This document shows, piece after piece, positions 12,001 through 60,074 of a DNA stretch of 64,000 bases. This DNA comes from Ascidiella aspersa (taxonomy: Eukaryota), in NCBI GenBank assembly GCA_963924565.1, contig OZ004607.1, forward strand, positions 10,912,001 to 10,976,000, in the 5' to 3' direction. The notes beneath the pieces were generated by a model that was not told where the DNA came from, searched no databases, and saw nothing but the letters and a program-made list of their open reading frames with translations. Made by a program: the position numbers and the translations under genes. How positions within the stretch are numbered: the stretch's first letter is position 1; each line of letters begins with the position of its first letter.

Positions 12001-15000
12001 TTCTTCCGATTTTTAACTTGCAAACCTAAAGTTAACAGTTCAAAAAACAAAATATCTCGATATGTATGAAAAGTTGCCGAGTGGAAATGTTCCAAGTAAA
12101 TTGAGCCAGGAGAAAAAGGGGGAACAAAACAGGTTTGATGAAGGATATGCTGTTTTATTAAAGAGCCAACCTAAATTAACTTACGGATGGAAAAACTCGG
12201 CAAACAAGATTTCAAACGCCAGCATTAATTGATCAAGAGCTTTAAATTACTTTAAATCAAAAGCCAAGCGACAAAACGTAAACCGGTCCGGGTGTGGAAA
12301 GGGAAACGGCTCGTTTTGAAGTTTTCCTTTCTCTTGGTAAATGCCCTTTTAACATGTGCCCTTTAGCCTCGCTTTAAAGTTTCGGCGGAACATAACAACA
12401 CAAACCCCGAAACCTCGGAGCCCAAATTGCCGCGGCGTAATTGCGACCAGGTGCGCAGCGTCGAACGCGAGAGCGCAGTTTGTGTAACGGACCAGATTAA
12501 AGCGGCACCGGGTCGAGTAATTGCTGGCCTCAGCGCGACAATAACCGTGGGATAAAATAATTGACGCCGCGCTCCGGGACTTGTTTACTTCCGCTACTAC
12601 GGCTAAAAGCCGCGCCCGGTCGGCCTGCCTGTCAATCAAATCGCGCCCCGGCAATTTCTGAACGGATAAATATTGACCTTGACGCTAATTGAAATTAAAA
12701 TATACTCGGGTGTATTTGTAGCTTGGATCAGCCAAGTACTGAGGCAACACGTTTTTAAAAAAACATTGTTTTAAAGTTTTTTTGGGTGTTAGCCCAATAA
12801 GCAACTTTATTCTGGCTAGGACGATTTATAAATATTGTAAACGCATTTTCAACGCATGGATTAGAAAAGAAGCTTTTACACTGGAGTAAATATTCGATAA
12901 GGTGCTGTATATTCATATCATAGTGTGCAACAAGTCGGCATCTTGTTTCCTACACACCATTTATTCTATACTGTTATATGAACCAGCCTCGGCAGGACAT
13001 CCACAGTTATAACCAACGTCCAAATACCTTTCAGGGCCCGATGGCAAACACGATCGGCGACTTCTGGCGTATGACGTGGCAGGAAAACGTCAGATGCATC
13101 GTCATGATCACCAAGCTTAAGGAAAGAAAGGAGGTAGGTGCTCAAAGTAGCTGAAATAATTGAAATAGAAACAAGTGGATTTGGTGGACGAAAAACAGTA
13201 GCATGGATATCCGAGCCATGTGAATAGGAAAACCACAGAAAACAATAAAGTTCAACGACAAATCATTTCTAAAAAACAATTTAAAATATGCCTTGTATTT
13301 CGCCATTAGTACAGTGATTGAGTTTGGCGTCGTATGTACACTTGCGATCTTTCGGAAGTGCAAATTATATATTTTCTTTGCTTTACGCAGAAATGCAGCC
13401 CCTATCTGCCCATGAACCTGGACGAAAGCGCGACATACGATGACGTCACCGTTTCGGTGGATTCCCTTCGCCAGTTCGAGCACTTCACCTTGCGGACGGT
13501 AAGTCGAATATGAAACTTCTCCCGTCATAACGTTTTGCACTGCCGTGTCGTAAAATCCCTCCTACTACACTACTAGAGTACATTTTTTGTGTTTGATTTT
13601 CAAAGGTGGAATGGGTATTTATTTCACAAGTATTTGTTTCAAGCTGGGTATAAATAGAACTTTCTGCACAGTTTTACATACAAACCATCAAATATTTGCC
13701 TGCAGTTGGTTTTAACATATATGACCAACGAATTTGATATTCCTTTCACAAGTATTTGCTTCATGCTAAGCTATAAAAAAAAACTTGCACACCAGCCACT
13801 AAACATTTACAACATACATAGAACATGGTTTTGCATACCAGCCAACACATTTTTGCTTTCAGTGGATTTTAACACACGACCTTCAAATTTACGAATTTAG
13901 CTCAGTTTAACAAACAATCCTGTAATTTTGTTGCTTTAAGCACGCTTTAACAAAATCCCTTTTTTAACAAATTTTAACAAACGAACTTTTGCGGTTTCCG
14001 CTCACTTGCGCAAACTCACTCGACTTTTCTCCCTTCAGCTATCTCTGCGGCATTCGAACGGCGAGAGACGCGCGGTCCAGCATTACTGGTACACAACCTG
14101 GATGGATCACGAGACGCCAGAGAAGACGCGCGGCCTTTTGGAACTCGTGCAGGAGGTTACGCGCTGGAACAGCGAGCAACATGGGCCCACTGTCGTCCAT
14201 TGCAGGTTGGTTCTTCAACATGATTTTACTGTCTTTGTCTAACGCATTTACCCGGCTAACCAAGTAATTTAAATGGATTATGGGATAAATCATGGAAATA
14301 GTTCAAAACGTGGCAAGTTAAGGTTAATATTCCCTGACACCACCTGAACCCAAACCCTAAATCCAACCCTATCTTTAAAACTAAACAATTGAAGAGGAAT
14401 TTATTAATTCCACCGGCATTTAATTGATATCAGTATTTTATCCTAAACTTTCATATTAATTGTGCTTACCGCTTTTATGAACCCAAATTACACTCGCCAG
14501 CGCACAAGTGCAGCCAGGGTTGCCCAACGACTGGTCACGACATGACTTTTTTGTTGAAAAAAAGCGCAACATGGCCTAAACTTTTCGCCGCTATAAATAA
14601 AAGTATAATTTTAAGCATAAAGGATTACTAACGAGAATTGAAAATAGTAGACGCAGTGGGTTAAAATAACTTTGGGTCAATTCAGTTTGCGAGAGTGTTA
14701 TTTGGATACACTACAATGAAAGCCATTGCATACGTAAGCCGTAATTGTTGGTCAAAAAGCAGCTTTAGAAGGGCTAGATCGCAGTTTTTAACATACATTC
14801 AGATGTGTTTGCATGTGTTCATTAAATATATTACCTCTGAATTAAGCTTCTTTTTTAATCGAATACTTTGCGCTTTTTTGCTCACTTACGGTACTTTTGC
14901 AAAACAATGCAAAAAACATGTTATGTTGCGTTTTTTAGTTGTATTCCTCACAAACAACAGCTGCAATCTTTAACTAAGTTGATGTTTTATGAAAGCCTAA

Positions 15001-16407
15001 TGTTTGGATTTGTGTTTCAGCGCTGGCATCGGAAGAACCGGCTGCTTTATCGCCGTCAGGGCTGGCTGCCAACAACTCCTCGAAATCGGAAAAGTGGACA
15101 TTCTCCGCATCGTGTCCCAGATGAGACTCGACAGGTAGGTTTACTTAAAACTCTAGCGATTTGAAAACTATGTAACTTCATAAAACTGTCGTTTGTGTAG
15201 CTACAAGTGTACAATTTTTCTCATACCAATGTGCTACTTTTCACAAAAAAAACGCCGATCTCAGGTGGAGACACTTGAAAAGCGTTAACTTTTCCATCAT
15301 TGAACCAGAATAAAAGTAGTTTTCTGTTTTGTTAGCTTATCTTGCCATTTTTCTTTTCTGGCGCATATTTACTACTAAAAATAAGTTTTACTGGTATATA
15401 TTTGTTCAGCTAATTATTCACTATTCAGCCGAAACGTTGGACAAACAAATATATACCAGAAGAACTCATTTTTAGTATACTATGCGTGGTAGCAACAGCA
15501 TATTGATTGTCGCATATTTGTTGTAACAATTTTTTTTTGGCATGTTTTAATTTTTCGTTATGTGTTTTGCAGAGGCGGCATGATCCAGACCTGGGAGCAA
15601 TACCAGTTCGTGCACCAGGCCCTCAGTCGATACGCGCGCATTCTGGCCGGGGAGAACGTCACAACCCCCTCGACCACCGGTTCCATCCGCAGCCCCCTTG
15701 GGCCTATCGGGGGCGGTGGCACCCCCAAGCAACAGCAGCAGCCGGCCCCCGTCGAGCCCCAGCGCCCCAGTACACCCAAACACCGCCGTTCCCTCTCGGA
15801 CAACAACAGCCTCCCCGCTTCCAAAGGCATCAAGGTGTGTCAGAAGAGCGAGGGTGGTTCCCCAGCGCCCCAGGAAAAGAGGGTCCCTAAGCGGAAGCCC
15901 AAGCTGCGCCTGGGTAAGCTGCGTGACATCAGTACCGCCCCCTCCTCCCCACTGCCCCAGGAAGAAGCCCCCTCTCCTCGTCTCGTTGTAGTGAAAAGCG
16001 TGTCTTCTCCCACCATTCGCTCTCCCTTTGCGCGACTCTGCCTCCAAGCAAAGGATCTAAACCGCAGCGCCTCACCCGCCTCTTCCGTCAAGTTCGAGTG
16101 GCCGGATCCCACGAAGTCCTCCTCGCAGGAGGAGCGCCTCCCCTCCTCTCGCGGAGGACGGAAGAGCAATGAAAACGATCTCACAATCGAGGTACCCCCT
16201 TCGCCGGCCTGCAACCCCTCACCTACCCAGCTGGGGCGCTTCTCGTTCGACCTGGTAGCAGCACGCAGTGGCCTGTGCAACGGCAGCAACCCACCGTCGC
16301 CCTTCTGCGAAAAAACGCCGCCGGGAAGCGCCAAGAGCACGACACCGCGCGCCGGAGTGCCAACCACCTGCTCACGCTTCGTTTTCCCCGGCGCCGAAGC
16401 GAGATAG
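1..16407 (+). CDS. PTPRR: KIM-family (PTPRR/PTPN5-STEP/PTPN7-like) protein tyrosine phosphatase, 5'-partial, 11 exons in window
   Basis: Phase-consistent GT-AG exons: <1-209, 982-1220, 7532-7646, 8823-8906, 10923-11107, 11763-11932, 13035-13133, 13391-13498, 14039-14205, 15021-15134, 15573-16407 (TAG). The spliced protein has the KIM GLLE|[52 protein letters not shown], the P-loop [11 protein letters not shown] and the Q-loop [11 protein letters not shown]. The basic stretch [15 protein letters not shown] at the window start looks juxtamembrane. The gene is probably co-orthologous to all three vertebrate paralogues. Confidence 0.93.
532..832. mobile_element. hAT-like MITE (degenerate)
   Basis: Inverted termini ctggggttcttaaaact ... 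agttttaagaacccctg with ACCCC subterminal motifs; no clean TSD. Confidence 0.6.
3818..4268. mobile_element. hAT-superfamily MITE with intact TIRs and 8-bp TSD
   Basis: TIR cagtgattctcaacc ... ggttgagaatcactg; identical 8-bp flanks ctctagtc (3810-3817 and 4269-4276); subterminal GAGCCGC repeats; non-coding. Confidence 0.9.
4764..4850. repeat. 23-bp tandem repeat, ~3.7 copies
   Basis: Unit aatttgct(g/t)tgttaactttggag repeated directly. Confidence 0.85.
9770..9990. repeat. Diverged ~130-bp tandem duplication in a PTP intron
   Basis: caagtgtaaatgcttacgtaaaaaggc...ggaaaggggttacgctcg versus caagtgtaaatactgacgtaaaaatgc...ggaaaggggtttcgctcg. Confidence 0.7.
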
Positions 16408-27500: not shown

Positions 27501-30500
27501 CTATAGGTTCGTTTCTTTCAATGCGAGCTATAGGTTCGTTTCTTTGATGCGAGCTATAAGTTTCGTTTCTTTTGATGCAAGCTATAATTTTGTTTCTTTT
27601 GATGCAAGCTATAATTTTGTTTCTTTTGATGCGAGCTATAGTTTTGTTTCTTTTGATGCAAGCTATACTTTTGTTTCTTTCGATGCGAGCTATAGTTTCG
27701 TTTCTTTCAAAGCGAGCTATAGGTTCGTTTCTTTTGATGGGAGCTATAGGTTCGTTTCTTTTATAGCATGCTATAGGTTCGTTTCTTTTGATTCGAGCTA
27801 TAGTTTTGTTTCTTTTGATGCAAGCTATACTTTTGTTTCTTTTGATGCGAGCTATAGTTTCGTTTCTTTCAAAGCGAGCTATAGGTTCGTTTCTTTTGAT
27901 GGGAGCTATAGGTTCGTTTCTTTTATAGCATGCTATAGGTTCGTTTCTTTTGATTCGAGCTATAGTTTTGTTTCTTTTGATGCAAGCTATACTTTTGTTT
28001 CTTTTGATGCGAGCTATAGTTTCGTTTCTTTCAAAGCGAGCTATAGGTTCGTTTCTTTTGATGGGAGCTATAGGTTCGTTTCTTTTAAAGCATGCTATAG
28101 GTTCGTTTCTTTTGATTCGAGCTATAGTTTTGTTTCTTTTGATGCAAGCTATACTTTTGTTTCTTTTGATGCGAGCTATAGTTTCGTTTCTTTCAAAGCG
28201 AGCTATAGGTTCGTTTTTTTTTATGGGAGCTATAGGTTCGTTTCTTTTAAAGCATGCTATAGGTTCGTTTCTTTTGATTCGAGCTATAGTTTCGTTTCTT
28301 TTGATGCGAGCTATATGTTCGTTTCTTTCAAAGCGAGCTATAGGTTCGTTTTTTTTTTGATGCGAGCTATAGGTTCGTTTCTTTCAACTAGGTCATTATA
28401 AGTTGCAAGTAGTATTGTTAAAAGGTAAAATTAATCCTTTGTTTGTAATAAATCATTGTTTCATAAAACTGTTTAGACTACTACATCTGGTTGTCTGTGT
28501 TTTTTTTTACTTGATGCATGTCAGAAAAATAAATTTTTTGATGTTTGAGGCTTGGGTCGTGAGATGTTCATAAAACTCCGATTTGGGTCGCGCTCAAAAA
28601 AGTTTGAAAACCACTGGGATAACTGTTTTATCAGCAAACGACCAAATTACAAAACGTTTTTATTATAAACATATATTATGACAATCCTGAATAACAACTA
28701 TTATATAGGTCAAGGTTTGTACCACTTTATCAAATGCTGCGTTAATATACAAGTTTCAGTTAATAGAAATGAAAAAAAAAACTCAATAGGGCCTATAAAG
28801 CAACAATATCAAAAGCGGAATTATCTATAGTACCTTAGCATTAGGAGCACGTTAATAAAACTAAATACGAAATATTACCTACGACAGAACAAGGTCGAAT
28901 ATCGCTAATAAGATCTAAATGCCTAAATAACAACGAAAAATGTAGCGTCGGCCGTGTTCGACGTTTGAGAGCCCTAGTTTATACGGCACTGATGTTTTGG
29001 TACCGACAGTTTATCTTTATTTGGTATTGGGATTGGGGCCGGCGATGGAAGGGTAAGGGGTGGGGTTGGGTTGAGATTATTAGGGAAGTAAGTAGTGAAG
29101 TTGTGTGGTTTGTAAAAGGTCCTTAGACCCTATTAAGGGCTGGGTTTGCAAACACAATAAAAGTGACCGATACACGAAAAAAATGCTGACGCGCATTTTC
29201 GAACATGATGATGTCCAATAAAGTTCTGAAAGCAAACTAGATTTAGAACAAGGACAGGTGGAAAGTTCTTGATTTTTCACCTCGTAAACAGGGCATCAGT
29301 TAACGCATTTCACGATGCAATTAAATATAGAAACAGACGCACTTAATTATTTTCGGGAACTGGGAGGTATCTTATACGCGTTGATGTCTAATTGATTGAT
29401 TTAAGTATCGAGCTGCTTTAAAACCCACCAATTTGCAATCAAAATTTTGCTATGTTATATAGTAGTAACATTTAAGCTAAAAATCATCTTTGATTATTTG
29501 GAATAACGGCTGATAAAAAGTATAGTTCAACATTTCCTGAGGTCGCAAAAGCCAAAATCAAGTGTGGTCAACGCTATAGTAGGAACCTGGTCAACAGGCA
29601 GTTTATGGCAACCTAATTATGGCGTGATCTGCTGTCATTCGATCTGGAGCTTTTGCGTTTCTATTTTTGTCGCTTTTAAAGCCTCAAAATCGGCCTTTGG
29701 ACATGCTTTGTGGGAGGCGTTTAAAACAAGCGTAATCAAGAAAGCGATCTGGAACTTTTTTATGAAGGTCGTGTCGCGCAGCCTATTAACAAGCAGCAAA
29801 CTCGTCCACATCGCAAGCTGTGTAGTCGGTGTCACGACTGGATTCAACGGATGAATAGTAACTGCTATTTGTTCGGGCAGATTCACAAGCGCGTGTTGCG
29901 GGTGCGTGTTGTGAGGTCTATAGGCTCGTGTTTTTTTCGCTTCCTTTTCTTGGGCGATTTACGTTGAATTTTTGTGTATTTTTTATTGATTAAGCTACCT
30001 GTCAGTGTCGGCTTGGTTCACATCGTAGACCACTTTGTCTCCCTCCAGCGCCTGAATGCGCTTGCACACACAAATCGATGGGTCATTGGGGGCCGTTGCC
30101 ATGACGATATCGCCCCTAAAAAGAAAAAAAGCTGCGAGTCAGCTCTACTATAGAGTCATTTTAAAGACATACTTAGTAATTCAGTGGTGCACGTTTCTGG
30201 ACAACAATTTTTGCTAAATCATGTTTTTAAATAAAACTATAGAGTAATGAATTGGAAAAATAGGGCAGAGACATTTCTCTAGAATAAAACATAACCTACG
30301 GACGAAAACGAGTGAAGATTTGATAATTCGTGTAATATACCCTACAAAAAACCGCAGAATAAATATTCATCAACATCGATCTTTCGAAACTTGAACGCCT
30401 GTAAGTTTACGAAGCACAACACAACCTTCTGCGGGGCAGGGATGCGGTTTGGCGTGGTTGATAAAACAGTTACTTTGTAACCAAGGTTTAAGTGGCCTCA

Positions 30501-37816: not shown

Positions 37817-38902
37817 TCAACTGTTATTGCTCAAAACAGGAGAAATGGCTTGTTTTGATTGTGACAGAAAACCAAGTGCTTGCACCATTTTGTACTGATC
37901 GGGTACCTCCATGAGTATTTGCAGTGCCAAGGCTGCTTCTATATTCTTCCCATTGCAGTCTTTTATAATGCTGGCATACTCCACAAACTGGAAGTTGTCA
38001 AACTGACGTTGCGGCAGCCAATCATCAAACTGATGCAAGATTGACCAAGGTCCATCGCCAACACCAACCACCACAATACTAAGGGGGTAAAAAGAAGCGG
38101 CGACAATTGCTTTGGCCGTGGGTTTTTCATCAACAAACTGGCCATCAGCTATGATAACGAGCAAGTGAAACTGTTTTGTTTTCTCCACAATGTCAATGGC
38201 GCGATATATGGCAGGTGCATAGCTAGTAGGACCTCCTAACACCACACGAGTGGCTGCGTCTCGATATGACATTAGGACATCATGGAAGTCACTGCAAGGA
38301 AATCCATCTTTGCGTAAAGAAAATACATGCTTGTCCTTTGTAATGGAATCACCAAAGCCAAAGGCATTTATTCCAAAACTCTGCTTCGAAATAGGGTTCA
38401 TAATTAAGTCGCCCTTATTAAAATTAACAAATGACCTCATGGTATAGCCTAAAACAGTGATTATATGCTGATAGGGATTATTTAGAGCTTTTGTTGTTAA
38501 ACTGTGCAATGAAAGTCCTTTATTAGACGACTTGCCCTGCCACTCATTGCTGGCTGTAAAATCTATGCCCAGAATAAGTTGACATTTTTCCAGGCCAGCA
38601 TTTTTCATCGCATTTGAAATATCATCGAACGACTGAAATCGGTCGACAAAGGCACGAAAAACAAAGGGATCAGGATTGGCTGAATCCCATTTTAAGTAAT
38701 TGTTATTTTCAGGGTCTGTTATAGTATTAACAAAAGTTTTAAATATTGTGCTCAATCTTGATCTTTCTTTGTTAAGAATTCCAACGGATGACGAAGAGGA
38801 TTTAAGGTTTGAATGTTGTTCTTTTTTGTTTCCTTTAAAGTCATAGGTTACATAAAGATAATACAAGAAAATGGCGCCAATTATAAAAAGCCACAATGAC
38901 AT
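37817..38902 (-). CDS. Atypical copine-family vWA protein (RGLG/CPNA-type) with N-terminal membrane anchor, no C2 or RING; single coding exon
   Basis: 361-aa ORF with a hydrophobic N-terminus (LWLFIIGAIFLYYLYV). Copine motifs: AGLE..QLILGIDFTASNEWQG, SLH...NPYQ, AFGFGDS, GPTSYAPAI, FHLLVIIADGQ, AS.YPLSIVVVGVGDGPW, FDD.LPQRQFDNFQFV, ALQILMEVPDQY. Confidence 0.92.
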   Translation of the reverse strand: MSLWLFIIGAIFLYYLYVTYDFKGNKKEQHSNLKSSSSSVGILNKERSRLSTIFKTFVNTITDPENNNYLKWDSANPDPFVFRAFVDRFQSFDDISNAMKNAGLEKCQLILGIDFTASNEWQGKSSNKGLSLHSLTTKALNNPYQHIITVLGYTMRSFVNFNKGDLIMNPISKQSFGINAFGFGDSITKDKHVFSLRKDGFPCSDFHDVLMSYRDAATRVVLGGPTSYAPAIYRAIDIVEKTKQFHLLVIIADGQFVDEKPTAKAIVAASFYPLSIVVVGVGDGPWSILHQFDDWLPQRQFDNFQFVEYASIIKDCNGKNIEAALALQILMEVPDQYKMVQALGFLSQSKQAISPVLSNNS

Positions 38903-45000: not shown

Positions 45001-47127
45001 TTGAAAACATTGGCCCGCAAGACCAAAAAACCTTGTTTTTGGCCCGCGATGAAAAGAAGTTGGACCACCCTGATCTCAAACAATAGGGCAGTGACCATGT
45101 ACAACTCAAGCAAACCACATTTTTCACTTTTGTCATCTTTCCGGCTGCCTGATTTCATTCCAGTCCCTTCTCTGAAAATATTTGGTATGAAATCATGCCC
45201 AATTCATGTGGTGTCTTAGTACGGATTCTTCTTGACTTGCTCCCCTCATTTTTTTACTTAAGCCTGCAAAGCTCAACAGTTAGGCATTAGGCAACGGCCA
45301 CGGATGATAAAGGTTGTAAGTTAGTATCTTACCGCAGGCTTGCTTTTCTAGCTGTCAAACTATCCCTAACTTGACAATTTGCATTCAGGCGTTCTTACTT
45401 AAAACACTGTTTTTTTGTTTTGTTTACATTTCTTTTTTGCGTGATAACAAAACGCAATACACCACTGTTGAGCGACGGCCAAGGATGTTGGTAATGCAGG
45501 TTGCTTTTATAGTTGGCGATTTCAAAAAAAAGTATTGTAGGCATAACTGATTTAGGTACTAACTTGTATATAACGCTAACTTGTCAGGCATGCAGGCATG
45601 CAGGTGTTTTCAATTTAGGCACTGCTTTTTCGACTCATGTTGTGCTCCTCAGTCGGAGCACTTTCGTACGTATTCGTTTTTTGCCGCGATAACAACACGC
45701 ATTACACCTTACACAGGTCAAGCCCCTGTCCCAACGTAAAGCAGGGCGACGACTGGAAGGACCCGTCAGCTTGCGAGAAGGGCGACAGCTGCCAGTTCTG
45801 CCACACGCGCACCGAGCAGCAGTTCCACCCGGAGATCTACAAGAGCACCAAGTGCCACGACATGACGCAGACGGGCTACTGTCCACGCGGGCCCTTCTGT
45901 GCCTTTGCGCACGTCGAGCAGGAGATACGCATCGTAGAGGACGGCCCGTTGGCGGACGGCAATTTTGAGCAGGCGAGCGAAGGCCCTGGAAATTACTCGT
46001 GGAGCGAGTTTGCGCGCAACTTCAACCTGGACCCGACCGACTACAGTCGCAGCATGCCCAGTCAGTCGTTGCTCAACGAGTACAATCTGAGCAGGAGCTT
46101 TCCGACCTGCCCGTCGCCCATCTCCAAACCGCGAACCACTTCGCTGAGCAACGGCAAAGGCCCCGGCGTCGGCGGCGACAACTACTCGAAAGCGCCCGGC
46201 TCAGAACGCAATCTGACCGAGTCAGGTGGCCTTTACAACAACAACAGCAGCAGCGGCAGCATACCTTGGGCGCTGCAGGGAAGACGCAACAAGCGCAACT
46301 CGCTCAACAGCGACGCAGTGCCGTTCTACCCGCCCGACGAGACCGTCGACTCGGTTGTGGGAAATGCGCTCGACGACCTGGACTTGGACGAAGGCGGAGG
46401 CAGCGGTGACAAGGCCGATGTAAGAAGCGTCGCCCAGCAGGGCAATTTCTGGCAGCGCGACGCGACGCTTTACCAAATGTCGGCGCCGGTCAATATCCCA
46501 GGAAACGTGATGGAGCTATCCCGGAACCCGATGCTCTCAATATCACCAACGACCTTGTCAAACGCGCTTGGCGGCGGCGACATTCACGGCGTCAACGCGG
46601 CTCAAACCGGCGCATTTCCGCAGCATCACAGCCAAGGCGGCCACTTCCAGCAGTCCATGCCGACAGTGGGCAGCCTTGGCACACCAGGCAGCTTCCCAGG
46701 CTCGATCATGAGCGCGTCGCTGGGCAGCGGCATCACGACCAGCCTGGACCTGGAGCGCATGCAGCAGAAGTGCAAGCAGTGGGAGGAGTCGTGGAACCAG
46801 GCCAAGATCGCGTGCGACGCGTGGAAGCGTGAAGCGACCGAGGCAAACGAGCGCGCGCGCGTCTCAGAAGACCGATGCGGAATGGCGATCGAGCGCTGTC
46901 GCCTTCTCGAAAGCCAACTCCAGTCGGCGCTGGATCGGGAGACTAAGCCGGATCCGGTTTCTTCCTCTTCTTCGCCTTGCACCCAGATCTACCAGGCGCT
47001 GAACCGGGATGCTCTCGGCGAGCTGGCGCTTCCTGCCTTGAAGGATCTGGCCGCCCGCTACAAGGAGGATCTGGCGCACGTCGAGAAACTCGTTTGGGAA
47101 TTTGTTTGGCCCGGCAAGCAACAATAA
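42052..47127 (+). CDS. UNK: Unkempt CCCH zinc-finger RNA-binding protein, 3 coding exons
   Basis: Exons 42052-42323, 42817-43230 and 45717-47127 (TAA), in phase. Signature sequences: HYTYLKEFRVNQCPLFLQHKCTQHRPFTCFHWHF, YHLRYYKTGTC, YKTEVCKRPPRLCRQGYACPQYHN, CHTRTEQQFHPEIYKSTKC, CPRGPFCAFAH, and the coiled coil WEESWNQAKIACDAWKREA. Confidence 0.96.
44756..45072. mobile_element. hAT-superfamily MITE in Unkempt intron
   Basis: Termini cagcgtggtccaact ... agttggaccaccctg; flanks atctaaaa/atctcaaa (7/8 TSD); GGCCCGC subterminal repeats. Confidence 0.82.
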
Positions 47128-53100: not shown

Positions 53101-54283
53101 CCTCAGGGCTCCTTCACGGAAGGTCGCCAATAGATCATTTGTTTTGGTTTACTGTTAGGCGTCGGATATTTCGTATTATTAAGAGGGGAATGGCTGAAAG
53201 AAAATATTAAGCACATTTGAAATACGGGCCTTTATCATTGACCTCTTAATTCTATTTAAGGCCAGTGCGAGTTCTGGAAACAAACTGCAATATTCAAATT
53301 TTGACTAGAAAGAAGAATTCAAAATCGGAGTTCAAATCGCCTTATCCTTAACGGCATATTACATCATGATAAAAAAAATTCGCGCTTTAAAATTACAATT
53401 ATTCTGATCTGCAAAACACAATAATCTGTTGCGGTTGCGGATTAAATTCCCAAATAAAACATATTATCAATGGCGGGTTTTATTTTCCATTGAAATTTGT
53501 GTTAGTTAACTGTTTGCATTAAAATGTATTTTAACTTTATTTTTAAAGTTGACAAAAAATGACCTGACTGGCAGCGGACTTAGGAGATCTCAGCATGGCT
53601 ACAAATCAAATCGGGAATACAAATGTGACACATGGATAAATGATGTCCATCAGTCGCTTTTGTATCAAAACGTTTTAACAAAAGCGTTTTACTATACTTA
53701 AATCGGCATTAAACTTTTATCGCTATCCGGCGGTTTTTAAACAGTCATACAAAGTTTCATGAAAAACTCGTCATTGTAGTTTTTTCAAAGTTAGCTGGGC
53801 GGCAAGCTCTGTATTGTCATTTAACGATATCTCACCGACGCCAAAAAACACAAATACCGATCGTTCTCGTTTTTGCTACAGCGAGACGTGGTCAGGCCCG
53901 GTCCGCCTGAAAAGAGATGACACCCGTTTTTCCGGCGAAATTCTCCTAGCCATGAATTGAGGGTCTAATTACGCGAAAATAATCAACGGGTCGGCGTTTT
54001 TTCAATGCAAAAGCAACCCACCAGGTACCCTAATGAGCAGTGGCTTGCAAACAACTGTAAGCGGTCGCATCTGCCCAAGTGCGTCAAACACAAACGACCA
54101 ACATCGATCCAAGAGCTTTGAATTGCCAAAAGAAACCTTGAAACCGCACAAAAGCGCCAAGGTGTTGCGCAATCGTTCACGACAGCAAAGGGCCGGCTGC
54201 TGCTTTTCTTTCCAGAGTTGCCCGCACCCACCCCCAGCGTGCCGCGAAAGACACCTGTCAGTCAGCGGGCCGCCGCGGGGGTT

Positions 54284-54415
54284 TATATAGCCGACCCCGG
54301 ACACGGAGTTAAGTCAAACGAACACGAAAGCGCACGGAAAACAACGCTCGTCACAACGGAAGCATTCGCGTCTTAAGAAATTCGAAGTTATCTCTCTACT
54401 CCGAAACAAACCAAG
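54284..54415 (+). promoter_or_regulatory. TATA box and non-coding first exon of the PTH-like gene
   Basis: TATATAG at 54284-54290 follows a GC-rich stretch. An ATG-free, A-rich leader ends in a consensus donor AAG|gtaag at 54415/54416; the next acceptor is tttcttttcag at 54678. Confidence 0.7.
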
Positions 54416-54690
54416 GTAAGATTGCGTTTGAATGAATTTGATGTATGGCCTACGCTGGTAAAATAGCCAAGCTGGTTTATGTTATGTTGGCAGAAAAAAT
54501 GTTTTTGTCATCCTGTTATTCTTTTAGTTCTCTCCGCATGCTTTAAACAAATTCATTCTTGATAATTTTAAACCGCTATATAATGCCCCAAAAAATTATA
54601 TGATGACAGAAAAAAAAGAAAGCTTCTTTCCATATTTCATAAAATACTTTTTACATATTCTTCGTTTTTTCTTTTCAGTTAGTCGAAAAC

Positions 54691-57600
54691 ATGAATCAGA
54701 CATTACCTGTCGCCTTAGTGGTCGTCCTATTCGCGATCCAAGTCTCCCAAGCATACACGTTAAGCAGGTTAGTGAAGTAAATTGTGTGTTTTTATATCTG
54801 CCAATTATATATTTGTTTTTTGCTTAAAATCGGACATATATAGAATTTTAGGAACTTTAGGGTAAATATCTTATTAAGTGTCAATACACGTAGTCATCAT
54901 CTAAGCAGGATAAAAACGTATCCCAATAAACTTAAGACTGATTAGTATATGCAACAAATCGTGCAAAGGTCCACGTCAGTGTCGTTTATTTGTAAGTAAA
55001 GCATTATTTATTTAATTTTTTCTTACAACTTCTAGGCGAATCGCATCTAAAAAATTTTCAAGTTGGAAGTAAAAAGTTGCTATATTGACAGCACTTCTTT
55101 CGAGTGAGTTGCAACGAAAGCGTTAATAATCTAATTTTAAACACCTGATCCACTGACATTATAGAGCAGCCTATACAAAAAAATGTTGCCGCATTTTTTC
55201 TTACAACTTGTATAGGCGAAATCGCACTTAACATTTTGTTAAGTGAAATATGAAGGGTTGCAAATTTGACAGCCTTTTTTAGAGTAAGTTAAAACGCTTG
55301 CGTTAATAATCTAATTAAAAAAAACGATCCACGGACATTGGAGTACGAAAGGGGATTGATCGGATACTAAAGATCCGTCCGACGGTTTTCGCGCGGAGTC
55401 GGCCGTTCGCCGCGCAAACCGCTTCTCGGCCCTTAATTCTGCGACTTAACGCGTGTCGGCTTGTGAGCAGGCAGCGACGCTCCAGCATCAACGCCGACAT
55501 CTCGCTGCACGAAAAGAACGCCAAGAAGGTGCAGAGCCTTTACCGCCAGTACTACCTGCGCAAGATCCTCGACGACTTTAACAAGCGCGACGGTTCGAGC
55601 GCTCCAGCAAATCCCGTGGGACCGGCACAGGAAGACGACGCCGACAACGGTACGTGCTCGTGTTGTTGGTTGATCTGTGGTTGCTTTGTCGGGTTCTCTA
55701 TATAAAGAGGCCATTTTCTTTACCCGTCGGGTCGCCTGGGAATCCGCGGTGGCAATTTTCGGCTTGTGGCTGCTGTTTCGTTGTACCCAAGCGAATGCGA
55801 TTGAACGGAAATCTGTATTATAGAATTGCGTTATTTTTTCCTTTCGTATTTGTTGCTTAAATTTTTGCCAATTTTTTTTTTCCGACTTCGCGTTAATTCT
55901 AATCGTCGCTAAAGCGTATGTCGGCTTTATTTGATAACCCCATCTTTGTGCTAACTTTGATAAATTGCAGTTAAAATTAAGTTTTTCAAAAACAAAGGCG
56001 CTGAAACGCTACAGCACAAAAGCGGGCGGATAAATTTGTATGGCTATGACAGTTTAATAACTTTATTAGATCCTTTTTGTAAGTTTGATTAGGAACGGGT
56101 CTAACACATTTCCATAGTCTCACGTTTTATTTTCAAATCTTGATAAGCTTTCGCGTTCGTATCAGTTGTAAATTAAGATAAAAGCAACGTAATATAATCG
56201 GACGGGCACATAGTTAATTTAAGTGAGAAGTAAGTTAGAAAAGGTTAGTTCTACCAATTAAAGTGTCTAATTGCATGAGCGTCCTTAAAAAGAACGGTTG
56301 TGCGTACGCTTGTAGATTTAAAATTCAGCATTACCTGTTTGCATTAGTGCCACGTCAGCAGAAACTCAATTCGGAGTGCTCCTGTGTGCTTAATTAAACA
56401 GGTTAAAAATACTTTTGGCACGTTTTAATTAAGTTTCTTTGCGAAAGGCCGCAACGGGTGTTACCACAAAGCTTTAAATATTTAACATTGGGTTTTGGGG
56501 GGAAAGCCACGGAGAAACGACACGTTAAGGGAATAACATCACCTGTGGGAATTAGCCGGCGTTTGAACGCGAATTTGTAAGATTATTTTAAATCGCAGGA
56601 ACATCTATTCACTTAAATATAGCAGCTTCACATGGCGCAATTAAAACAGTTCGTTATATTAGCAGGAAGGCCACGTTTTAAGCATCTCTGGGCTTACCAT
56701 TTACTTCTTCCTGAAAGAAATGAAAGAAACTTTGTGACAAACACAGAGCCTTTCAAAGATCAGTACGCTGAACTGTACGCCCGTAATAGCTTGTCACCGA
56801 GGTTACGTTTGGTTTTGTGATCAGGCTTATACTGAAAAAGAAAAATTTAACAATAGCGACTTTTGCGAAATAAACGAAACCGCTTTGACTTCAGTAATAG
56901 CTTTTCCCACAAAGTGTGCTCTTCGGGTTAAAATCAGGTCACGTCAATTTGCTAAAAGCTCGTTTACGACCCCCAAGTGAAACGATCGGTAATGACATGC
57001 TTCAGGTTAACACCATTTTTTCGGTAAAATATTCGTAACGGTGTTGGCGCAAGGTGACAGCGTATAGCACCAACTTGATTAAAAGCGACTGTTGTTTACT
57101 GACAAGGCTGCCCCTATAATGCATCAAACCACTTCAAAGGCCTTATTAATACCGAGGAATATTTTCCTGCGCAGATTCTTCAAACGAAGACCACGATTAT
57201 TATCTGATCGATGAGAAAAGGGACCTCGTGTCACGAGTGCACGGTTAGTGCTTAAACAAATCAACGTATAATTTCGCTCTAATTCTATCGAATATAAAAC
57301 AAAGGCAAAAACACGACGGCTATTTTCCCAGCTCTTTGTGGTTTAAGCATGATTTATTTTTGATAAAGGAATTATAGGACTGCGCTTTGTTTCCCCTTTG
57401 TAGAATAAAAACAGCAAAGAAAATAGAATTGGGTGTAGCATTATAACAAAAATGTTGCACGCTAAAGTTTTCGTTTGGTATTTGATTTAAAGGACATTTA
57501 CCCAGAGCGCCGTTACGAGATTTAAGTTCACTATAGGCCAATATAATTTTGTGGTCTTAGGCTACAAACACCATGGAACGTCGGAAAGTTTGTAACGTAA

Positions 57601-59167
57601 AATTTATAGTTTATTTTCGCGAGACGTCCGACATTGGAAAACGGCACAGATTTACTCTTAGCCAGCATTAAGTTAACCAGTCTTAGTAAACTAAACGCCT
57701 GCAGCCTGCAGAGTGTAAACATGTCATTCTGAAAACACTTAAGTTCCATTCAAGTCATTTGTAAAATACATTAGGTCAAATCAAGTCATTTTACACTAAA
57801 GACTAAAGTCAAGATAAGTGATTTAAAAACAGGGCTTGTTGTAGAAACGACAAGAAACAAAGCGAAACGCAATTTTGTTTTTAAAAATCTTTTCTAGACT
57901 TTGGCTTTGTTTGAAAGCAATTTACGAATGTCTACATATAGTGCAGGAGTCGGCAACCTTTTGTATTTGCAGTGTGCCAGTTTATAAATAATTTCAAAAT
58001 ATCAACAACTATAGCGTGCCAAAGAAAAACTTCTATATTTGGTTTTGCACTGGCAACCAGGGCTGCGGAGTCGGTTAAAAACAACCCGAATCCAACTTCG
58101 GCTAAATGTGCAATTTCATCGAGTCCCGAGTCCAGCTCAGACAACCTGTATTTTAATGACTTTCGTAACTAAAATAAGATGGATATTCAGCAATCCAATC
58201 ATATGGGTCATGAAAAATGTGCCACCATATGCTATTCCACCTATCAATTAGCAGTTCGCTGCCTTATCAGTTTGGAAATCTGGTACTGATTATGCGCACA
58301 CGTCGAACTCGGGTAGTTCTACCTAGTCTTACTCGAGTCCCGAGTCCGACTCCGCACTGCCGTGATCTGACATTCCAATTACGAATAATCTGTGTTTTTT
58401 TTTCTAATTTACGTATCATGGGATACGCAAATAAACCTAATTTCATAAGTTAAATTCTGTTAAGTTACCTTAAAATTTAAATCTGTTAGAAAAAAAAACG
58501 AACTGTCCCGAACACAATACTGTGCCCGCTAGTTTGGAACATACTTTGACGCTTTTCAGCCGAAACTTAAAAGTGTTAATAATATTAGTTTGGGTTTTAG
58601 CTTGGCTTCTCAGTCGACCAAAAAAACACGCATACTTCAAATGTAGAATGCCCGCTTCGGCGGCCTTAACGCAGTAAACATCAAGCCAAGTTAGGTAATA
58701 GTGACGTAATACGAACGGTTAGTCGTAAACAACAAGTTTAACTCCCACCAAAAATAGTGTTATATACAACAGTTAAGACACTAGTTTGTGACACGAACTG
58801 GAAATGTGTACAACCGTTTAGTTAGCGATAGTGTTAGTGTAGTAATAATATAATGTTAATGATGTAATGGTTGCACTTTCTTTAGTGATACAATATGGGC
58901 GTTAAATCATTTGGCGTGCCAGCCAAAATCATCTCGCGTGCCAAAAGTGGCCACCAGTTTATGAACTTGGTCTAATTCTACTCGCTATTTACAGGATTAA
59001 GAAGTGCGCTTTCCTATTGGTTACGTCGCCAAGTGAAACCAGCTGTTATCAGGGAACTGCGCAAAAACCTGCCGCTGGGAGCGGGAGAGAGCGACGAAAA
59101 GGCTGAAAGTTATTTGAACTCGATCGTCGAGTACTACCCTTTGGAAAAGTACAAAATGGATTCCTAG
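54691..59167 (+). CDS. Parathyroid-hormone-family (PTH/PTHrP/TIP39-like) prepropeptide, 142 aa, 3 coding exons
   Basis: Exons 54691-54767 (MNQTLPVALVVVLFAIQVSQAYTLS, signal peptide), 55471-55649 (RQRR|SSINADISLHEKNAKKVQSLYRQYYLRKILDDFN|KR DGSSAP...) and 58995-59167 (GLRSALSYWLRR...KYKMDS*). Phases 2/1 are consistent; AATAAA at 59324. Confidence 0.82.
55015..55340. repeat. Diverged ~180-bp tandem duplication in the PTH-like intron
   Basis: ttcttacaactt...taggcgaa...gcgttaataatctaatt...gatccac.gacatt occurs twice in tandem. Confidence 0.8.
58058..58360. mobile_element. MITE-like element with GAGTC repeats in the last PTH-like intron
   Basis: cagggctgcggagtcgg ... ccgactccgcactg inverted ends with internal gagtcccgagtcc repeats. 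Confidence 0.65.
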
Positions 59168-60074
59168 ACCTGAACTGCATACGCTAACACTTACTGGACG
59201 TTCGACCTTTTGTATACAGGCGCACTGCCTATTTATTTATTGTGTTTATTTTTCTTTTTTCAGTTTAATTCAGGAGATCTAAATACTCTTTTCAAGATCA
59301 CAACCGGGTTTAACTTTGGATTTAATAAAGCTTTTTGTACCATTTTTGTTTGTCATCGGTGTACATAGATAACGTTTTCTTTATTATTTATTGTAAAGCA
59401 TTTTGTTTTTAATTAGTGAGTTTTATTGGCAAAAATAAATTTCATCCTATGGGGAATAAATGTTGTTTTGCCCTAATCACCAGCTTTTAGCCAAACTTAC
59501 TAGCAGTAAGCCTACAGACGAACGTCAAGTGATAAGCTTGTTTTTTTGCATCGTGCAGTTGCACTTACTAGTTTGTTCACTAAACTCGAACATTATAATT
59601 TTTTTCTGTTGTCCATCGGCCAACGGATTTTTCAGTGGATTCTGACAAGCCGTAGTTCAATTTATAATTTTATAGTTATTTAAGGGGATCGTTGCAGTAC
59701 GAGCACGATGAAATACGAACAACGAATATTTTAAGGACACTTTAAGAAAGGAAAACAAAAAAGTTTGCATAAAACGACAGTGATTAACACAGTAGGCGAA
59801 ACAAAACAAAAATAATTATCGAATTAGGCATCGGGATGGCTGGCAGTGAACATTGTGACGTCACTAATCGAAACACTGACGTCAATCGTTTCATTTGGTA
59901 AAGTGGCGTAATTCGCGTCGGCCGAAAACCTATATCGTCAAAATACTCGAAACTGTAAGTCCATACGCAGATGATGACGTCAGGGTAACGTCAACGATCG
60001 AAAGGTGACGTCGTTTTATTTGTTGAAGTGACGTAATTTGCCTGGGCAACATACTCGAAAAACGCATGATGACG

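Follow-up and report, generated by a model that had tools for sequence, protein, structure and literature searches.

Hormones of the parathyroid hormone (PTH) family, namely PTH and PTHrP (ligands of PTH1R) and TIP39/PTH2 (a ligand of PTH2R), have Arg20, Leu24, Leu28 and the L-H-D or M-H-N motifs as hallmarks. Arg20 is common to all hormones of PTH1R and PTH2R and sets them apart from other class-B ligands, while Trp/Phe23, Leu24, Leu28 and Val/Ile31 touch the extracellular domain of the receptor. The coding intron of the pth genes sits immediately 5' of the basic cleavage site. As the preliminary description of our locus had stated, PTH-like peptides have already been predicted in tunicates and likewise in amphioxus (Mirabeau and Joly, 2013), and ligand-receptor pairing in amphioxus is reported by On et al. 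(2015). Two PTHR-like genes are present in Ciona.

The locus described here lies in a window of 64,000 nucleotides, the whole stretch of Ascidiella aspersa DNA that was analysed (contig OZ004607.1). We consider it reasonably probable that an unannotated gene in it encodes a prepro-hormone of the PTH family (PTH, PTHrP, TIP39), and the interpretation put forward in the preliminary description is in this respect partly supported. Because tunicate PTH-like peptides are already on record, the gene is likely to be a new member of this known family and not a new family. Sharing animal group and proposed family with those peptides, it is probably this species' orthologue of the predicted tunicate one, orthology being assumed.

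Gene model and predicted precursor

All features from which the gene had been assembled (TATA box, GT-AG introns, exons, the split R-QRR site, KR and AATAAA) are found by direct reading where they had been placed (Table 1). The donor of exon 1 is AAG/GTAAGA at 54415/54416. From its ATG at 54691, exon 2 encodes MNQTLPVALVVVLFAIQVSQA/YTLS followed by two bases of an Arg codon, and ends in the donor CAG/GTTAGT. The first 21 residues (54691-54753) form a predicted signal peptide, recognised by its h-region, LPVALVVVLFAI, and by agreement with the (-3,-1) rule; cleavage is predicted after SQA. Exon 3 (55471-55649) follows the acceptor ...GTGAGCAG/G (AG at 55469-55470), completes the codon AG/G (Arg) and ends in the donor ACG/GTACGT. 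With the stop codon TAG of putative exon 4 at 59166-59168, the joined exons give an open frame of 142 codons; as noted earlier, the list of open reading frames holds only a mis-started fragment of it, a GTG-started 80-residue frame (55463-55705). Exons 1 and 4 are the least certain parts of the model, and a family match looked for with the putative exon 4 extension was not found.

Table 1. Features of the candidate gene and synonymous SNPs, in positions of the window
Feature	Position	Strand	Basis or remark
TATA-like box TATATA, putative core promoter	54284-54289	+	direct reading; GC-rich stretch precedes
Putative non-coding exon 1, start approximate	54315-54415	+	sequence pattern alone
Exon 2: 12 nt 5'UTR, ATG, signal peptide, pro-piece	54679-54767	+	direct reading and one synonymous SNP
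Exon 3 start: completes R, encodes QRR, giving furin-type site R-Q-R-R directly 5' of the peptide	55471-55480	+	
34-residue PTH/PTHrP/TIP39-like peptide SSINADISLHEKNAKKVQSLYRQYYLRKILDDFN, predicted bioactive product	55481-55582	+	translation, similarity statistics, predicted helix
KR dibasic site (55583-55588), acidic Pro-rich spacer DGSSAPANPVGPAQEDDADN, first base of Gly codon	55583-55649	+	
Intron 3	55650-58994	+	high-copy interspersed repeat inside, ~57650-58960
Putative exon 4 coding part, 57-residue C-terminal extension, internal RR site	58995-59168	+	acceptor TATTTACAG/GA, open frame
AATAAA polyadenylation signal	59324-59329	+	direct reading; ~155 nt 3' of stop codon
Synonymous SNP A>C	54753		exon 2 (sole SNP listed in exon 2)
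Synonymous SNP	55477		QRR just 5' of the 34-mer
Synonymous SNP	55513		within the 34-mer
Synonymous SNPs	55606, 55642		KR/spacer part of exon 3

The layout had been likened without reservation to that of vertebrate pth genes. The position of the intron, immediately ahead of the basic cleavage site, does correspond, but the classic pth genes lack the putative coding exon 4 with its C-terminal extension, so that the two layouts agree in part.

The precursor of about 142 residues would enter the secretory pathway through its signal peptide and be cut by furin or a prohormone convertase after R-Q-R-R and at K-R. Trimming of the basic residues by a carboxypeptidase would then leave a 34-residue peptide, predicted not to be amidated because a C-terminal Gly is absent, and likely to adopt one long amphipathic helix. 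AlphaFold predicts a single helix across the whole 34-mer (pLDDT 90-98), followed by a disordered spacer after KR. A secreted prepro-hormone and a helical, non-amidated peptide of about 34 residues would be features in common with vertebrate PTH and PTHrP (PF01279). PTH stays 84 residues long, whereas the 34-mer is predicted to be cut out by the KR at position 35-36; in the predicted release of a short peptide, whole, from a small precursor it resembles TIP39, which differs in having 39 residues and no MHD-like motif, where the 34-mer has L-H-E-K. The length of exactly 34 residues, on which the preliminary description had placed weight, is no argument for homology; PTH(1-34) is a pharmacological fragment and not a natural cleavage product. 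The host also differs from those of PTH and PTHrP, being a sea squirt with neither bone nor parathyroid gland.

Similarity of the 34-mer to PTH, PTHrP and TIP39

The comparator sequences of PTH, PTHrP and TIP39 were verified against PDB chains 1ET1_A, 1BZG_A and 7F16_P. Local BLOSUM62 scores of the 34-mer are 39 with PTH(1-34), 43 with PTHrP(1-34) and 29 with TIP39, reached by 9, 1 and 271 (p ~0.014) of 20,000 shuffles, respectively, while the summed score of 111 is reached by none (shuffle maximum 94); these p-values may be optimistic, as shuffling destroys helical periodicity. The 34-mer resembles PTH and PTHrP more than it does TIP39, and TIP39, an accepted family member, itself scores lower against PTH and PTHrP (27 each) than the 34-mer does. 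A six-frame reading of 286 kb from this genome gives 12,883 open frames, among which exon 3 ranks first on every measure (sum 111 versus 85 for the runner-up; minimum of PTH and PTHrP 39 versus 28). The similarity is beyond chance in that no shuffle, and none of the other open frames of the 286 kb, attains it. An HMM built from the three sequences also has exon 3 as its top match (E 0.063; next E 1.4). Extrapolation of the null tail nevertheless predicts 4-40 chance open frames of equal similarity score per 308-Mb genome, and independent context is therefore needed, namely the signal peptide, the cleavage sites and selection.

Ungapped alignments all peak at a single offset, in which the numbering of the 34-mer equals that of TIP39 and that of PTH plus two, and the C-terminal two-thirds align to all three hormones in this one register. 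In a MAFFT alignment R22 and L26 are invariant, and identity to PTH(1-34) is 34%. The family-specific Arg20, aromatic 23, Leu24 and Leu28 (PTH numbering) are retained, together with L-H-(D/E)-K and equivalents of K13, L/I15, Q16, L18, R/K25-26, D/E30 and hydrophobic 31. With TIP39 the alignment is gap-free, S1, A5, D6, R22, aromatic 25 and L26 coincide, and the two-residue N-terminal excess over PTH is shared; position 30 is M in TIP39 and L in the 34-mer. The N-terminal register is ambiguous. The N-terminus is one or two residues longer than in PTH and PTHrP, and V2 and Q6, which serve in activation, have no clear counterparts.

VIP, glucagon, secretin, GHRH and CRH give no signal against the 34-mer (z from -0.5 to 1.4). 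None of these five class-B ligands is a better match, and the similarity, as judged from these alignments, is specific to PTH, PTHrP and TIP39.

The Pfam Parathyroid model (PF01279), proposed earlier as a check, matches neither exon 3 nor anything else in the genome, and phmmer against the PDB returns nothing at E<=10. No orthologue from another species was retrieved from 1.84 billion representatives or in the other protein searches, nor did the latter yield a tunicate PTH-like protein. Such negative outcomes carry little weight for this family, since a TIP39 query recovers neither PTH nor PTHrP from the PDB and a PTH query reaches PTHrP at only E ~0.1.

It is unlikely, but has to be weighed, that the gene is a real secreted-propeptide gene whose 34-mer is a lineage-specific tunicate peptide, the likeness to PTH reflecting convergence of basic amphipathic helices; such a peptide might act as a neuropeptide, as a different hormone or as a helix of host defence. 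The failure of profile and database searches to recognise a family, the modest E-value of the mini-profile, the few to tens of equal-scoring chance frames per genome, the possible optimism of the shuffle statistics and a recurring pattern, seen in the resemblance of the same stretch to an IQ motif, all speak for it. Against it stand the silence of five other amphipathic class-B ligands, the matches at positions named in the literature (R20, aromatic 23, L24, L28, hydrophobic 31 and L-H-D/E-K), the fit of three diverged family members to a single register and an intron placed as in the pth genes. For an antimicrobial helix, the net charge of about +2 is low.

Selection on the reading frame

The frame of exons 2-3 is under purifying selection. 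All five SNPs listed there, the best-supported ones from assemblies of two other individuals, are synonymous third-position changes (joint p ~2e-4 for the same change types placed at random), and 67 more beyond these may include non-synonymous ones. In the antisense open reading frame the four exon 3 SNPs would fall at the first codon position. The 50 nt of intron next to exon 2 contain three SNPs, versus one in exon 2, and within the 150 nt 5' of the exon 3 acceptor SNPs fall at every codon position, accompanied by indels of 1 nt and 3 nt and by an allele with a deletion of 34 nt. Exon 3 is free of indels among three haplotypes, whereas the flanking intron has several. The polymorphism pattern backs the earlier model of the signal-peptide and peptide exons.

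That there is no functional gene at all, the locus being a chance constellation of open frame, splice-like sites and signal-like exon or a decaying pseudogene, is improbable in view of this pattern, of a GC3 of 0.80 in exon 3 versus an intron GC of 0.36, and of in-frame junctions, a signal peptide and two basic sites that bracket exactly the hormone-like stretch. It would accord with the weak polypyrimidine tract of the exon 3 acceptor, with exons 1 and 4 having been drawn from pattern, with the lack of such a protein in large collections and with the RNA data. In the roughly 6% read of an RNA run with the same species label, no reads fall on the exons and no spliced transcript is seen at the junctions that had been proposed for checking; the only reads in this stretch fall on the intron 3 repeat, which has a contig word depth of 51,000-66,000 versus a background of 50-100.

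Candidate receptors and mode of binding

The genome encodes a candidate PTH1R-like receptor exon (HRM) at G000:C2:34677798-34677905, its top matches being solely PTH1R chains (E 1.5e-9, versus 4e-7 for the secretin receptor). Further HRM exons of class B1 type appear GLP1R/GIPR-like (L004), ambiguous between PTH2R and GHRHR (L005) and, by eye, CRHR-like (L006). If the 34-mer is a PTH-family hormone, its C-terminal half may, by analogy with PTH and PTHrP, dock into the extracellular-domain groove of a PTH-receptor-like class B1 GPCR, with R22, Y25, L26, I29/L30 and F33 in the places of R20, W23, L24, L28 and V31 of PTH. The N-terminal part with L-H-E-K would enter the transmembrane core and activate the receptor, most likely raising cAMP.

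The several HRM exons also leave room for a different class B1 receptor, of glucagon/GLP-like, CRH-like or calcitonin-like type, as the partner of the 34-mer, and pairing is not readable from sequence alone. This is very improbable: VIP, glucagon, secretin, GHRH and CRH show no similarity, the Pfam Hormone_2, CRF and calcitonin families have no matches, the H-S-x-G-x-F-T N-terminus and amidation are lacking, and the equivalent of the PTH-specific Arg20 is present.

Least probable is that exon 3 codes for part of an intracellular protein, a calmodulin-binding motif of IQ type (PF00612): the only matches among the 1.84 billion representatives are IQ-motif repeat proteins (E 1e-6 to 6e-5), the ESM Atlas neighbours are IQ clusters (scores 0.87-0.89, below 0.9) and VQSLYRQYYLRK, with its basic amphipathic pattern V-Q-x-x-x-R-x-x-x-x-R-K, fits IQxxxRGxxxR apart from the consensus Gly, but PF00612 itself gives no match, the stretch is a single copy with convertase sites on both sides, and exon 3 needs an upstream start, for which the sole in-frame partner found is the signal peptide of a secretory context. 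The IQ matches follow from the PTH-like helix itself, since the corresponding stretch of PTHrP has the same look.

Anatomy of the peptide gene and polymorphism of its exons

The stretches 54200–55800 and 58850–59500 of the window, which lies on contig C1 (10,912,001–10,976,000) of the 308.6 Mb Ascidiella aspersa assembly, were read directly and the pieces were translated exon by exon. The anatomy that the preliminary description had claimed for a hidden peptide gene is confirmed, and each element is found by reading and translation at the position assigned to it (see the table). All three introns follow the GT–AG rule, and splicing the exons in silico gives an open frame of 142 codons. The mechanical ORF list holds just one piece at this locus, an 80-residue fragment with a GTG start, and the claim that the ORF track offers nothing beyond a mis-started fragment is therefore correct. 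Short spliced prohormone genes of this kind elude both ORF-based and profile-based annotation.

Features of the peptide gene in the window
Feature	Position	Strand	Description	Basis
TATATA box	54284–89	+		direct reading
Possible non-coding exon 1	end 54415	+	donor AAG/GTAAGA	sequence pattern
Exon 2	54679–54767	+	ATG at 54691; codes MNQTLPVALVVVLFAIQVSQA then YTLS	translation
Exon 3	55471–55649	+	base 1 closes an Arg codon, then QRR, the 34-mer, KR and a spacer	translation
34-residue peptide	55481–55582	+		translation
Spacer 3' of KR in exon 3		+	proline-rich, acidic	translation
Putative exon 4	from 58995 to 59166–68	+	ends at stop TAG	open frame
AATAAA	59324–29	+		direct reading

The signal peptide and the cleavage sites were judged by rule. 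The signal-like segment is 21 residues long and ends in S-Q-A before the predicted cut, after which YTLS-RQRR leads directly into the peptide. By this rule, the predicted precursor has the make-up of a prepro-hormone, with a signal peptide and a basic site immediately before residue 1. The intron 54768–55470 divides the first Arg codon of R/QRR, such that a coding intron separates the signal/pro part from the basic site. In elephant-shark pth2 a coding intron likewise precedes KR, and in teleost pth-l one precedes SRR. The proposed vertebrate PTH layout fits the intron just 5' of the basic cleavage site and differs further downstream: classic pth is devoid of a coding exon 4, whereas the Ascidiella gene model contains a putative one. 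The product of this putative exon has no matches in Pfam or, at 0.8, in the ESM Atlas. A protein search finds the peptide gene in a single copy in the genome.

No reads on the exons were found among about 7.8 million RNA records. This is not decisive, because these records are only about 6% of one data set carrying the same species label and the tissue is not given; at such a sampling depth, absent RNA reads are no evidence of silence. Polymorphism supports exons 2 and 3 of the model, exons 1 and 4 being putative. Two DNA runs from the same species cover the stretch fully at 95–99% identity. The five listed differences in exons 2 and 3 (54753, 55477, 55513, 55606 and 55642) are all synonymous third-position changes; the listing is restricted to the best-supported differences and leaves out 67 others. 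The joint probability of such an all-synonymous pattern is 2e-4 when the same types of change are placed randomly in exons 2 and 3. Read as an antisense ORF, the four SNPs of exon 3 become first-position changes. In the 150 nt 5' of the exon-3 acceptor, each of the three codon positions of this frame is hit by differences, and indels of 1 and 3 nt and a 34-nt deletion allele occur as well; constraint therefore starts at the modelled acceptor. GC3 in exon 3 is 0.80, compared with an intron GC of 0.30–0.38.

The segment 55249–55390 of intron 2, just 5' of exon 3, is polymorphic and rich in indels, with indels of 1, 2 and 3 nt in the contigs of other individuals, where the 34-nt deletion allele spans 55349–55384. 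The segment is located within a GC- and CpG-rich island that runs through exon 3 to about 55800.

Relationship of the 34-mer to PTH, PTHrP and TIP39

The search with the parathyroid family profile that the preliminary description had suggested came out negative. Pfam PF01279 (Parathyroid) gives no match at E ≤ 10 on exon 3 and none in a scan of the whole genome, and control genomes are equally silent. Scanning the three coding exons against Pfam returns just sub-threshold noise (DUF7228 and NCF1), and phmmer finds nothing for exon 3 in the PDB at E ≤ 10. Among 1.84 billion representatives HMMER retrieves only three IQ-repeat proteins, and a word-seeded search of 5.8 billion proteins with the 128-residue open frame (scored region 50–111) gives no candidates. 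In the ESM Atlas, exon 3 picks up only IQ clusters below 0.9, and a metagenome scan yields no relative. The power of these searches can be judged from controls. With TIP39 (chain 7F16_P) as the phmmer query, neither PTH nor PTHrP comes up at E ≤ 10, while PTH (1ET1_A) and PTHrP (1BZG_A) retrieve each other only at E of about 0.1 and neither retrieves TIP39. Since accepted members barely or never retrieve one another, the searches are underpowered for the PTH family, and a direct alignment test was used for this reason.

In this test, the peptide was aligned locally (BLOSUM62) with PTH(1–34), PTHrP(1–34) and TIP39, whose sequences were checked against the same PDB chains, and the peptide was shuffled 20 000 times. 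The score is 39 with PTH (reached by nine of the 20 000 shuffles), 43 with PTHrP (one shuffle) and 29 with TIP39 (271 shuffles). The summed score of 111 is reached by no shuffle, the maximum being 94. On the same scale TIP39 scores 27 with either PTH or PTHrP, and PTH scores 58 with PTHrP; the peptide thus outscores TIP39 against both. Ungapped full-length comparison gives one sharp optimum per partner, and the optima agree on a register in which the peptide and TIP39 share a numbering equal to that of PTH plus two. MAFFT places TIP39 and PTH in the same register, and in its alignment of all four peptides R22 and L26 are invariant.

The empirical null consisted of the open frames of 15 residues or more in 286 kb of the same genome (the window and other stretches), 12 883 in all. 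The exon-3 frame ranks first by every measure: its sum is 111 where the runner-up has 85, and the lower of its PTH and PTHrP scores is 39 compared with 28. A three-sequence HMM also ranks exon 3 first, at a marginal E of 0.063. Extrapolation of the tail of the null predicts 0.0007–0.009 equal-scoring frames per 64 kb window and 4–40 per genome, and the score alone is therefore no genome-wide proof. What makes the similarity convincing is its setting: RQRR and KR enclose precisely the segment that matches, an in-frame signal peptide lies 5' of it, and its frame is under purifying selection. Alignment, shuffles and genomic null together support similarity of the 34-mer to accepted members of the PTH family in one register.

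A cryo-EM study lists Val21, Trp23, Leu24, Leu28, Val31 and Phe34 of PTH and Phe23, Leu24, Leu27, Ile28 and Ile31 of PTHrP as contacts to the receptor ectodomain, and finds Arg20 conserved across all PTH1R/PTH2R hormones and not in other class B ligands. With the offset of two, the sequence of the peptide provides this motif in R22, Y25, L26, I29/L30 and F33. R22, Y25, L26, L30 and F33 take the places of Arg20, the aromatic residue 23, Leu24, Leu/Ile28 and the hydrophobic residue 31, respectively. The peptide further carries K15, V17, Q18, L20, R27-K28 and D32.

Matching is less straightforward in the N-terminal third. The conserved elements of the family, according to a comparative study, are V2, Q6, H9, R20, L24, L28 and the motifs M-H-N / L-H-D. 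Only if this third is displaced by one residue against the C-terminal register does L9-H10-E11-K12 of the peptide correspond to L8-H9-D10-K11 of PTHrP, and I3 to V2; Q6 of PTH has no equivalent. The one-residue insertion proposed earlier agrees with both Smith–Waterman and HMMER, which place the shift in this third, but the ungapped register pairs the N-terminal residues differently, with D6, I7 and L9 facing E4, I5 and L7. The N-terminus of PTH is one or two residues shorter than that of the peptide; TIP39, which shares the numbering of the peptide, likewise has a longer N-terminus than PTH. AlphaFold, run on the single sequence, predicts one helix across the whole peptide (pLDDT 90–98) and disorder C-terminal to KR. 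The peptide is intermediate in sequence between PTH/PTHrP and TIP39, and together with its TIP39 numbering this means that it could help to align the branches of the family and to improve profiles for invertebrate members.

Family placement and candidate receptors

In an alternative reading, exon 3 would encode an IQ calmodulin-binding motif (PF00612) of an intracellular protein. The IQ-repeat proteins found in the databases match through VQSLYRQYYLRK, which fits IQxxxRGxxxR except for the Gly. However, PF00612 gives no match on exon 3, the likeness is confined to repeats in long proteins, exon 3 is partnered by a signal-peptide exon, convertase sites flank the peptide on both sides, and a stretch of PTHrP has the same IQ-like look. 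For the Pfam result, the signal-peptide exon, the flanking sites and the parallel in PTHrP we attribute the IQ look to the PTH-type helix itself, and we judge the IQ-repeat proteins to be motif look-alikes and not kin of exon 3. Membership of the glucagon/secretin/VIP (PF00123) or CRF (PF00473) families finds no support, as neither profile matches the coding exons, VIP, glucagon, secretin, GHRH and CRH give local scores of only 13–23 (z of −0.5 to 1.4), the N-terminus is S-S-I-N and not of the H-S-x-G-x-F-T type, and no Gly precedes KR, in contrast to the usual C-terminal amidation of these ligands. Without this Gly the peptide is predicted to be non-amidated. PTH-family peptides are non-amidated, unlike most other class B ligands.

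Seven HRM-domain exons are present in the genome, on contigs C2, C3, C7 and C8 (loci L002–L008). For the exon at C2:34677798-34677905 (L002) the best PDB matches are all PTH1R (E = 1.5e-9), with the secretin receptor at 4e-7. The same genome therefore contains a PTH1R-like HRM exon of a candidate cognate receptor, whose ectodomain is divided among exons. The exon L005 on C3 (22.81 Mb) has PTH2R as its top match, which is weak and tied with GHRHR; L004 on C8 resembles GLP1R/GIPR, L006 is CRHR-like by eye and L007 is class-B1-like, while L003 and L008 are probably of adhesion-GPCR types. Ciona has been reported to have two PTHR-like genes.

The interpretation offered in the preliminary description is thus supported in part. 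The likeliest reading, which we hold with moderate confidence, is that of a PTH-family prohormone gene, the 34-residue product of which would act on a PTHR-like class B1 receptor. Two reviews state that PTH-like peptides of tunicates and amphioxus, which resemble the vertebrate family only weakly, were identified bioinformatically (Mirabeau and Joly 2013), in line with the earlier remark that the family is not new in these animals; an amphioxus pairing study (On et al. 2015) is also cited in the literature. The peptide is probably a new member of the PTH-like peptides already predicted in tunicates, and we assume orthology with the published Ciona peptide. It is also conceivable, albeit rather doubtful, that the gene is a single pre-duplication co-orthologue of vertebrate PTH, PTHrP, PTH-L and TIP39, combining a PTH/PTHrP-type core with a longer TIP39-type N-terminus and serving one or more PTHR-like receptors of a chordate without bone or parathyroid. 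If so, ancestral non-skeletal PTH signalling could be tested directly through peptide, receptor and site of expression in one animal.

In vertebrates, calcium and skeletal biology depend centrally on PTH signalling. Tunicate PTH-like peptides have so far consisted of the bioinformatic prediction of 2013, and our literature search found no functional work on any of them. The locus, a defined 34-mer and a candidate receptor exon are now in hand in one genome, which makes ligand–receptor pairing and expression mapping feasible in a sea squirt. A transcriptional similarity to the parathyroid has been reported for the endostyle of Styela, which is suggestive context only.

Rejected leads and surroundings of the gene

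A weak candidate for a second PTH-like locus was picked up by a four-peptide profile on another contig of the genome (G000:C3:8479191-8479262; L030:1501-1572, +) at chance level (E = 1.9, 17.5 bits). Its frame ends in SYVNSLQRRGWLNHL and a stop codon, which recalls LERRHWLN of TIP39. It has no basic cleavage site, its open frame is just 48 residues long and its surroundings are AT-rich; the match is probably due to chance. A synteny lead, a PAS-domain gene next to PTH as in the vertebrate ARNTL–PTH pair, was also dropped. The 'PAS_3' ORF at 27544–28401 is a tandem repeat without a PDB relative, and its Pfam matches (PAS_3 and BBP7) are weak and spurious. On the plus strand it consists of 8-residue units of the FVSFDASY(S/T/R) type over 285 codons in one frame, with a Leu-rich repeat in another.

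Intron 3 harbours a very high-copy interspersed repeat at 57650–58960, with a contig word depth of 51 000–66 000 against a background of 50–100. Many contigs break within it at 58055–58089 and 58326–58356, and the RNA reads of the stretch fall solely on this repeat. A tRNA scan calls none there, and a bacterial promoter/terminator scan of the stretch was uninformative.

The plus strand carries an apparently intronless gene some 7 kb 5' of the peptide gene: an uninterrupted ORF of 496 codons (45637–47127), in which matches to PF23261 (1.6e-17) and zf-CCCH mark CCCH zinc fingers of unkempt-like type. On the minus strand, an apparently single-exon ORF of 361 codons (37817–38902) contains a copine/vWA domain (PF07002 at 2.4e-47). 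By eye, plus-strand frames at about 14000–16400 resemble a protein tyrosine phosphatase catalytic domain (WMDHETPE, VVHC), behind which comes a long Ser/Pro-rich tail.
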